Below, one piece after another: positions 9,346 to 11,194 of a stretch of DNA of 36,897 bases. The position numbers and the translations under genes are program-made. The DNA comes from Auanema rhodensis (taxonomy: Eukaryota > Animalia > Nematoda): contig CAXKVF010000060.1 of assembly GCA_964057225.1 (NCBI GenBank), positions 1 through 36,897 on the forward strand, in the 5' to 3' direction. The notes under the pieces were generated by a model. The model saw only the letters and a program-made list of their open reading frames with translations, had not been told where the DNA came from and searched no databases. Numbering within the stretch: position 1 is the first letter of the stretch; the number at the start of each line of letters is the position of its first letter.

Positions 9346-11194
9346 TCACGAATTATAATAATTGTCTTTAAGTAATTTGATTTTTTTTGTATCACAGTTT
9401 ATATAATATGCTGTGAGATTGCTTCTGTGCTTCCCCGTATCTACTAGGGCATAATTGATATCCTCCTGGTTCTTGAATATAATGATGGACGAATTTAGAA
9501 TGCTGCCGAAAATTCCCATAATCAACTGAAATTTATTATATTCATGAATGTATTCGATGTAATGTATTTTACCTTCTTGTTGTTCACGGTTATTTCTATC
9601 TTTGGTCAGTGCTTTAACTATGTCGTATACGTTCGCCTGTGTGAGTCTTTCTCCTTTTTTTCTTATTGATCAGGTCTTTAATTTTGTTGAGTTTCTTCTT
9701 GTAGTTTGAAGTTGTGCTCAATTTATTAAATATGTTGACCAGATCGTTCTGACTCTGAAATATATCTCAATCAGTTGTTTTATATTATTTATGATTACCT
9801 TTAGTTCTGATTTAATGTAACTTATTTCGTTCTCGAAAATGTATTGAGTTACACTTTTCCAATCCATTTCTATTCCGTTAAAATAATTCGATATTTTAAA
9901 GAAATTAGATAATTTATGAGCAGTATCTCGTTTACTCATGTCGTGGTATAGAAAACCTTTGCATGCCTGGCAATGACAACGACCTAATAAATAAAATAAC
10001 AGTTGAATGTTGTATTATGTGTTGCAAACCTCGGCAAATCTGACAATGACATAGATAGAAATATGCCATGTTATCGTCTTTCATGTCATTTTTCTCTGCA
10101 TATTTCCAAAAAATTTCCTGTACTTCTTCAATATCTTTGTCTGCTTTTAGCGCATTTTTCTAAATTATATTAATGTTTGTCTTTTGGTAATGTTATTCCG
10201 AACCTTTATTTTATTCCATCAATTTTATAGTAGCGTCATAGTGTTTGTAACTATGATTGTTCAGGGGACCTCCAAACTTATGTTTGTTGATAGCATTGGA
10301 TTCTTAAAAATAGAAATGTTCAAATACAAGCATGAAATGAAAACCTGTTGAGGAGGTGAATTTCGAAGAGACATGTCCGAATAACGTTTTTCCTCCTTTA
10401 ACATATACTTTGTAGTAATCTGCTATACCATTTGGGTCATGTATACCGTTCTTATCAAATCTAGGATTCAAATTGATACAATCGGTTGTTTCATCAAGAG
10501 GCGTGAACATTATTCCAGCGCTAAATGTTTTGAGTTGTTGAAAAAGACTTTTCTAGAACTTACTTCTCCATTTTATGAACTAATTTTTTCAGTTTTTTAT
10601 TGTTCATTCCGTTTGTCAGATTCAAAAATTCTGACTTTTGGAAAAAACGGTTGCTCCAGAATTTCTCTTTTAATTCTTTTGTTTTCTCCGCAAGTTCCTT
10701 GATAATTAACAATAAAAAATAACAAAGAAACTTACTAAATGCCTGCTAATGTTGGAATCATATTTCCAACAAATTGGGCAAATGTCGCCTCGTCCTGCAC
10801 TTGTTTGTGGAACAAACTTGATGGGGTCATGTGCTAGACCGAATCCGAACAAATCTGAAAACGTTATGTTTAATTTTTTTTTAATTTTGACTTACTGTTT
10901 TGAATGCTTGTCATTCTACTGCCTCGCATTTTTGATCGTTCGAGGTCGATGAAACATCCAATTCCGAGTCCTCCAATCTCTTATTTAAACTAACGCCTTT
11001 AGGGAAAGAATTATATAATTCTTTTTGAACGGCAGGATCAGGATGTTTGCGAACATCTGCATAAAAAAAAATGTTTTTTGGTGAAATTTTGCAAACCCAC
11101 AAGATGTTTTATTTATTTCGTTTTTGATCCTTTTATTCAAAATATGCTGCTTACGAAAACGCTCGAGACGTTCAGAATCAAAGTTTTGCCTCAT
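9346..11194 (-). pseudogene. 10-exon spliced gene for a Cys-rich, putative zinc-binding protein (~470-490 aa if corrected), disrupted by ~3 frameshifts (unit 1)
   Basis: Manual splicing on the minus strand gives exons 11194-11101, 11056-10896, 10854-10736, 10697-10564, 10520-10345, 10302-10204, 10159-10030, 9983-9799, 9754-9573 and 9525-9346 (or 9392). The nine GT-AG introns are 38-47 nt, several ending TTTCAG/TTTAG. A TTTTTCAG acceptor lies just upstream of the ATG. Motifs CPICWKYDSNISRHL and CHCQICRGRCHCQACKG; frame breaks in exons 2, 6 and 9. Confidence 0.8.

Follow-up and report, generated by a model that had tools for sequence, protein, structure and literature searches.

KMT5A (SETD8, PR-Set7), which is SET-1 in Caenorhabditis elegans, is the H4K20 mono-methyltransferase, and SETMAR is a primate protein in which a SET domain is fused to a mariner transposase, encoded by a host gene that captured the transposase. 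Crustacean whispoviruses integrate into the 28S ribosomal RNA (rRNA) gene via multi-exon tyrosine recombinases, and telomere-specific recombinases related to those of whispoviruses have a C2H2 zinc-binding N-terminus (PMC10871703). The present analysis concerns a ten-exon gene at positions 9346-11194, on the minus strand, of a 36,897-nucleotide stretch from the nematode Auanema rhodensis (assembly GCA_964057225.1, contig CAXKVF010000060.1, positions 1 to 36,897), which is referred to as a whole as the window. The gene lies inside a 9.6-kb insertion in 28S, and it is in all likelihood the dead, non-autonomous remnant of the main gene of an insertion family that occupies one exact 28S site.

The window consists of two and a bit tandem ribosomal DNA (rDNA) units of 17,676 bp each, with the genes for the small subunit (SSU), 5.8S, and large subunit (LSU) rRNAs on the plus strand. 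The LSU gene is split, since 28S runs up to 5063 and restarts at 14667 with the insert between. As read on the plus strand, the 18-bp repeat AGACAGGTTAGTTTTACC is present both at the point of interruption (5046-5063) and at the restart of 28S (14667-14684). The site presumably differs from those of R1, R2, and R4. A count over the entire assembly (181 Mb, 112 contigs) gave 610 uninterrupted 28S junctions and 31 interrupted left junctions; therefore, about 5% of some 641 28S genes carry the 9.6-kb insert. Because adjacent units are 100% identical across all 9.6 kb, unequal exchange within the array is sufficient to explain the number of window-type copies.

Other elements are inserted at the same place. 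An element of 10.9 kb on contig C42, with largely different content, has the same two 28S junctions as the window insert, and its full-length relative of the window gene lies near the left junction, likewise antisense to rRNA. A long element of about 19-20 kb on C31, mapped at its left end, has the same left junction and the same gene orientation. Since such divergent element lineages lie within 28S flanks that are 100% identical, repeated site-specific insertion is favoured over one old accident, and the shared 18-bp duplication has the appearance that a recombinase attachment core would have. In the list of open reading frames (ORFs) of the insert there is no long ORF, and no search aimed at a reverse transcriptase (RT) was made. 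In the literature searched, the use of a nearby 28S site by mosquito RT elements was not confirmed. Whispoviruses resemble these elements in that they integrate in the same ultra-conserved 28S stretch and have recombinase genes with introns, and the whispovirus repeat CCGTCGCGRGAC corresponds to window positions 5038-5049, overlapping the 18-bp repeat by 4 nt (PMC10871703). However, they are large viral genomes for which no SET domain is reported (PMC10871703); the nematode recombinase is conjectural, and the likeness is one of analogy only.

The structure of the gene was established by script. Nine introns with GT..AG borders were located, of 44, 41, 38, 43, 42, 44, 46, 44, and 47 nt, exactly the lengths given in a preliminary description that had been made from the letters of the window alone, and each of the peptide strings quoted there is present in the sequence. 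The ten exons occupy 11194-11101, 11056-10896, 10854-10736, 10697-10564, 10520-10345, 10302-10204, 10159-10030, 9983-9799, 9754-9573, and 9525-9346. They total 1460 nt (remainder 2 on division by three), and therefore the reading frame is truly broken. The rRNA genes lie on the plus strand and this gene on the minus strand, as expected of the spliceosomal-intron gene antisense to rRNA that had been proposed. Exon 10 (9346-9525) ends in the stop codon TGA at 9348-9346 and has 46% amino acid identity to its paralogue; AATAAA stands at 9321-9316, 25 nt beyond the stop and just outside the exon. The next rDNA unit holds a second copy of the remnant (27022-28870, minus strand, offset 17,676) with 0 mismatches, so that the two units are the same, as had been claimed. 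Identical copies encoding the exon-5 peptide number at least 25 on rDNA contigs, and diverged ones are present on C8, C12, C31, and C57.

The paralogues on C31 and C12, at approximately 50% amino acid identity, contain the same exon pieces in the same order. Homologues that preserve intron positions had been suggested as a test of the gene, and the exon 6/7 and 7/8 intron positions are indeed conserved in the paralogues where the junctions were read. Because diverged paralogues keep the exon order, and because a hidden Markov model (HMM) built from external proteins ranks the exon-7 piece top, as detailed below, the gene is beyond chance. On the strength of the sequence, the nine-intron splice model appears almost entirely right.

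Comparison with longer relatives suggests what the gene once was. All searches were run exon by exon. Four such relatives share one architecture, on C42/C20 (four copies), C31, C12 (a short contig crowded with rDNA-spacer and element fragments), and the chromosome contig C8 at 5.50 Mb. These genes span approximately 45885-49960 on C42, 97690-102240 on C31, 47380-51714 on C12, and 5496200-5500460 on C8. In each, an exon with the motif CPIC...RHL is followed by an exon with RFF.KSEFLNLT, approximately 2.8 kb of conserved exons, a SET N-terminal exon, the SET core, a Cys tail, and a C-terminal region. The SET N-terminal exon (GVFA...G..VTAYYG), which contains the Gly-rich motif that binds S-adenosylmethionine (SAM), is found in all four. 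Window positions 10919-10459 are 96-98% identical in nucleotides to the C31 gene and positions 10463-9266 are 94% identical to the C12 gene; in these genes, the two segments are separated by about 2.8 kb. The breakpoint of the deletion or recombination can thus be placed at 10459-10463 (minus strand), with an overlap of about 5 nt, by nucleotide comparison with C31 and C12. Exon 5 (10345-10520) is accordingly a fusion exon, whose 5' part, to about 10459, matches C31 and is the start of the middle region, and whose 3' part, from about 10463, matches C12 and is the SET-core exon, the two being joined in frame. A tblastn search of the window unit with the SET N-terminal exon gave three matches, the best with E 1.5 and none in the gene region. 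Since this exon has no credible match in the unit, the SAM-binding third of the SET domain was lost together with the middle region before the point lesions arose. These comparisons show the window copy to be an internal-deletion derivative of a larger gene, and the earlier expectation that an intact homologue elsewhere might identify the element family is borne out by the relatives.

The identity of the product is best seen in the relatives. When the paralogues are placed side by side, they display GPL(I/N)NHS, then (D/E)E(L/I)FW(S/K)Y, and then a Cys cluster, in which the signatures of a SET domain are recognised. In the window, exon 6 (10204-10302) encodes the SET 'NHS' motif as GPLNNHSY, followed by a premature TAA at 10213-10211, and exon 7 (10030-10159) encodes the C-terminal strand of the SET domain with the motif EIFWKY and the first CxCxxC; GPLNNHSY and EIFWKY align with the NHS motif and the catalytic-Tyr motif ELxxxY, respectively, in the relatives and in KMT5A. 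A six-frame scan of the genome with Pfam SET gave matches at the predicted exons C31:101284, C12:51917, and C42:48992. The C8 relative (C8:5499234) scored 26.5 bits and the C42 equivalent of exon 7 scored 23.5 bits (E 7.6e-5), both over the cut-off, and the intact exon 7 of the 94%-identical C12 copy was matched with E 0.009.

Outside proteins lead to the same domain. A library-wide phmmer search queried with one sequence, the SET-end piece of the C8 relative, found only six proteins, of which three are annotated as 'SET domain-containing protein' in Steinernema and score approximately 50 bits with Pfam SET. These three (KAK0418810, KAK0418807, and TKR71989) end in a C-x-C-x2-C-x-G-x-C-x-C-x2-C...H tail. 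When the 1081 six-frame pieces of the unit were searched with an HMM that draws solely on Steinernema and metagenome proteins, the window exon-7 piece ranked top (E 4e-5), and weak, collinear matches were found on exons 6 (HMM positions 104-121) and 8. A profile of outside proteins had KMT5A/SETD8 as its best structure matches (E 3e-5), and this alignment stops at the 'PWL' flank, where the Cys tail starts. The element family shares with KMT5A the NHS motif, the GEELLxDY motif, and the 'PWL' C-terminal flank. However, KMT5A ends where the element family adds a six-Cys tail, membership of that subfamily is only suggested by the profile match, and the window copy, besides being broken, is without the N-terminal third of the SET domain. 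The Steinernema proteins, the only named ones found library-wide, have the same SET domain with the six-Cys...H tail, but their N-termini are long and disordered, neither a CPIC module nor an integrase-like middle region is present in them, their genes are chromosomal, and their identity is only about 35-42% over 57-85 residues. An initial SMYD-like interpretation, taken from a YF.C.C..C motif, was dropped because no MYND match was found in any piece and the best structural relatives are KMT5A. Searches of Protein Data Bank (PDB) sequences with the single exons 5, 6, and 7 returned noise only. A homologue search, a method limited by length and by shared words, retrieved only itself with the Steinernema SET region and nothing with window exon 8. 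An AlphaFold2 model of a Steinernema relative from a 14-row alignment was unusable (mean pLDDT 44.8).

The unusual Cys motif of the window continues into exon 8 (9799-9983), where the second CxCxxC is followed by a conserved His and a helical C-terminal region; amino acid identity of this exon is 51% with the C31/C12 paralogue and, over 30 amino acids, 53% with the C8 relative. The MAFFT alignment of the split exon pieces misplaced the second CxCxxC. All six Cys of the tail are invariant in the family and the following His is conserved in every relative inspected; therefore, the tail is probably zinc-binding. The cluster had been likened to the end of zf-4CXXC_R1 domains (PF10497). This likeness is not upheld, as exons 7 and 8 had no Pfam match at E up to 10 and their motif, a doubled CxCxxC, is joined to a SET domain. 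To judge by the aligned relatives, the tandem CxCxxC cluster is a conserved, family-specific C-terminal tail of a SET8-like domain. Likewise, the product had been taken for a DNA-binding protein, and it is replaced here by a SET-domain fusion on the evidence of Pfam SET on the relatives and the shared tail; the ancestral product would be a methyltransferase-type SET fusion protein rather than a simple DNA-binding protein. In the window, C31, C12, and C42 genes, an intron (window 10029-9984) separates the two CxCxxC motifs; it is absent from the C8 chromosomal relative (corresponding stretch L015 3790-3830), which represents a gain or loss within the family.

At the other end of the protein, exon 3 (10736-10854) carries the Cys motif of the N-terminal part, CPIC-x9-H, which resembles a C2H2 knuckle. 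The partial C2H2-like finger of the preliminary description is partly borne out, in that CPIC...RHL is conserved in every relative, but its second His is absent from the window: compared with a classical C2H2 finger the arrangement is C-x2-C-x9-H with no second His nearby, and zf-Di19 matched the C12 homologue weakly (E 0.057). Exon 4 (10564-10697) carries the conserved N-terminal block RFF.KSEFLNLT, and its amino acid identity is 40-52% with the C42 and C12 relatives and reaches 100% across 48 residues with the C31 copy.

After the deletion, the copy was damaged further. The lesions were defined by reference to the 94%-identical C12 copy, in which exons 5b-10 are fully open and in phase. In exon 6, a TAT codon, present in the C8 and C12 copies, has become TAA at 10213-10211, and in exon 7 a deletion of 5 nt near 10153-10144 shifts the frame; consequently the SET domain has no open frame in the window. 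A frame break had been recognised at this point before, but it was attributed to one extra nucleotide in exon 6. Exon 9 (9573-9754) is broken by insertions of 4 nt in an A-run (9654-9651) and of 1 nt at 9600, as seen by alignment to C12, where the exon is open and 177 nt long; the lesion placed earlier in an A7 run is therefore real in position, but it is of 4 nt and accompanied by the second insertion at 9600. The decay, claimed earlier to be the same in both units, is identical in every copy. Between the window and C12 copies, the ratio of nonsynonymous to synonymous divergence (pN/pS) is 0.27 (pS 0.138, pN 0.037), and therefore purifying selection probably acted on the protein during part of their divergence. 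The TAA, the 5-nt deletion, and the 2.8-kb deletion cannot be explained by homopolymer errors, and the window copy is very probably non-functional.

The 5' end of the gene model has a separate origin. Window positions 11383-10923 form a module that shares 93% of its nucleotides with the C42 element, and only as far as 10923, whereas homology to the C31 full-length relative starts only at 10919. The shortfall of 1 nt that had been supposed in exon 2 is instead the junction of these two unrelated modules at 10923/10919. The upstream part contains a small two-exon ORF, here called module X (10911-11194, minus strand, defined by comparison with C42), which comprises exon 1 and most of exon 2 of the preliminary model, with an ATG at 11194-11192, a 44-nt intron at 11100-11057, and a TGA at 10913-10911. 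In the C42 element this ORF runs on into other exons, and module X is probably the truncated 5' part of a second small element gene, separate from the SET gene. The truncated fusion gene probably has its true first coding exon at 10896-10914 (minus strand), where an ATG at 10914-10912 opens the peptide MTSIQN before a splice donor; in C31 the same ATG is located 20 nt after a TTTTATTTTCAG acceptor. The TGA of module X and this ATG overlap as ATGA (window 10911-10914), an arrangement that could permit termination-reinitiation or be a mere by-product of the fusion.

Upstream of module X, the acceptor-like site TTTTTCAG is read at 11206-11213 (minus strand) and is a possible site of spliced leader (SL) trans-splicing. 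The acceptor had been described as 12 nt before the ATG; it is present, but the distance to the ATG at 11194 is 11 nt. SL1-like RNA genes form dense arrays on C3 at about 6.74-7.10 Mb, often with a spacing of 252, 504, or 1008 bp, and their matches are full-length at 54-62 bits, under the Rfam gathering score of 75. These arrays, together with introns of about 45 nt ending in TTTCAG, fit what would be expected of a trans-splicing nematode of the rhabditid type.

A scheme for the origin of the stretch can be proposed as follows. The full-length relatives would encode one large multi-exon protein, composed of the CPIC...H module, the middle region, a SET8/KMT5A-like domain, and the Cys tail. Illegitimate recombination or deletion joined the first exon of the middle region to the SET-core exon, with removal of the integrase-like part and of the SAM-binding N-terminal third of the SET domain, and a portion of a different small element ORF became attached at the 5' end. 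One nonsense codon and three indels were then gathered by the remnant, which would make no working protein. It would have spread after its death, either by unequal exchange in the rDNA array or by trans-mobilisation through full-length relatives. The SET domain of the intact gene may have served the element, for example by marking the chromatin of the interrupted unit.

The nature of the middle region bears on a wider possibility. Its conserved blocks ENGQRPEV, SIRNSA(A/T)NTY, G(S/T)M(A/G)H...TH, and Q(I/T)Y(L/I)TDGR stand in the order expected of tyrosine recombinases, and such an assignment is a plausible but unproven conjecture at the level of motifs. If it holds, the family may represent an undescribed class of site-specific 28S-integrating DNA elements, in which an integrase and a SET8-like methyltransferase are parts of one protein and of which the 9.6-kb insert is a non-autonomous derivative; this is put forward tentatively, as a possibility rather than an expectation. 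The integrase of such elements would probably be a tyrosine recombinase with a zinc-knuckle N-terminus, and the element could write chromatin marks on the interrupted unit. The 9.6-kb insertion, which keeps both copies of the presumed attachment site, would then possibly be mobilised in trans. At least 29 intronless ORFs elsewhere in the genome, mostly of 413-438 amino acids, match Phage_integrase with 34.9-53.1 bits (e.g. C1:12974802, C6:4717783, and C8:25845349); they look DIRS- or Crypton-type, and their sequence is unrelated to that of the rDNA element gene.

Several results weigh against the account given above. The middle region, searched exon by exon, had no match in Pfam, a PDB profile search with it was blank, and ESM Atlas returned gag-like noise only. 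A genome scan with PF00589 found matches only in other elements, and hhalign of the middle region against the genome's own DIRS/Crypton-type recombinases gave E 0.27 for one block, which was in the right register, the others being non-collinear. The ten window exon pieces themselves had no Pfam match at E up to 10, and therefore the assignment of the window copy to the SET family rests on its relatives and one significant exon. Introns differ by 4.5% and exons by 5.6% between the window and C12 copies, which, on small numbers, is at odds with the pN/pS of 0.27. The change in the exon-9 A-run could stem from a homopolymer error, and both the splicing and the silence of the remnant are predictions from its sequence only.

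Alternatively, an ordinary host SET gene of the nematode may have been taken up as cargo by a 28S insertion that was enzyme-less or retro-mobilised, a possibility to which a match with an ordinary host gene had been expected to point. Such a match exists in part, as SET genes that are chromosomal, look like host genes, and encode the same tail without the integrase-like region occur in Steinernema; in addition, no recombinase or RT has been verified in the insert, and the relative on the C8 chromosome contig lacks both the 18-bp site and any rDNA within 8 kb. However, the C8 relative has the whole fusion architecture and not that of Steinernema, and the C42 and C31 relatives lie in 28S insertions at the window site. 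Capture is further opposed by the presence of the gene in two distinct elements with identical 28S junctions, and by the four lineages that, at 50-70% protein difference, keep the N-terminal module, middle region, SET domain, tail, and one orientation. On balance, the capture of a host gene appears unlikely.

It is also conceivable that the truncated gene is useful, with a product of about 165-170 residues that runs from the ATG at 10914 to the exon-6 TAA, contains the zinc-knuckle, and acts as a repressor or competitor in the manner of truncated transposases. The deletion is in frame, the ATGA overlap ties the upstream ORF to this ATG, and the truncated gene is the commonest member of the family, with at least 25 copies versus seven full-length loci. 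Its abundance, however, is accounted for by amplification of an array whose adjacent units are 100% identical over 9.6 kb, its expression is conjectural, and its exons are no better conserved than its introns relative to the C12 copy, all of which make such a role very improbable. Even less credence is given to an intact gene misread because the repeat is difficult to polish and was assembled with errors. One lesion does sit in an A-run, and identical copies are what systematic polishing errors would produce, but neither the change of TAT to TAA, nor the 5-nt deletion in non-repetitive sequence, nor the 2.8-kb deletion is a homopolymer error, and the N-terminal third of the SET domain is absent even when every small lesion is disregarded. 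The dead remnant of a larger fusion gene is therefore preferred to these alternatives.

As a remnant of this kind, the window copy may be compared with two further systems. In SETMAR, likewise, one polypeptide contains both a SET domain and a DNA-mobility enzyme, although the enzyme of the nematode protein is putative, the nematode fusion lies inside a mobile insertion, and its partner is not a DDE transposase. P-element KP copies and R2-derived deletion elements (PMC3414825) are similar in that the enzyme core is deleted while the ends remain, and full-length copies are fewer than deleted ones. The number of window-type copies differs from theirs in being explicable by rDNA array amplification alone, and trans-mobilisation is conjectural.

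The remainder of the insert has features of its own. Upstream of the gene, at window 11421-14117, there is a 281-bp tandem repeat in about nine and a half copies that are 97-98% alike, each with an internal 84-bp sub-repeat; the 281-bp repeats also flank a partial element copy on C8 and the long C31 element. A 73-nt motif, composed of a G+C-rich hairpin (CGGGGGC...GCCCCCG) and a T-run, is located at 6788-6860, 8944-9016, and 9173-9245, one copy being directly beyond the 3' end of the gene, and a related copy occurs on C12 (L014, about 6800-6900) where two gene fragments join. The part of the insert at 7858-8703 has 85-88% identity to copies on the C1 chromosome contig (447 first-look candidates), and it is either a dispersed repeat that landed inside the element or a contributor to the element.

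Within the spacer at 15346-17396, the first 50-110 nt of the 18S gene recur several times in inverted orientation, with 87-100% complementarity to 17275-17396. Among uninterrupted rDNA units, at least two periods occur, of about 8394 bp and about 6567 bp (C8 6740-69872 and about 10.97-11.86 Mb), and some of the C8 rDNA arrays are inverted relative to neighbouring arrays. At C8:4416000-4425999, approximately 4701-8741, an SSU fragment is followed by 281-bp repeats and then by the 5' half of a window-type gene at about 90% identity. This piece is a stray, older part of an inserted rDNA unit, and it has TAT at the codon that is TAA in the window.

Taken alone, the window copy is a pseudogene. Its relatives provide an explanation for the apparent want of a mobility enzyme in the 9.6-kb 28S insertion, in that its gene is the deleted form of a larger integrase-like/SET fusion gene, which is found in rarer, longer insertions at the same 28S site. 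The motif first noted as unusual is a conserved, probably zinc-binding tail of a SET8-like domain, common to a few Steinernema proteins. In the literature searched, no report was found of a mobile element that carries its own histone-type methyltransferase. If the full-length protein proves to be a fusion of an integrase and a methyltransferase, the family would be such an element, and, if this is true, it would allow direct tests of how chromatin in the disabled units is handled by rDNA parasites.

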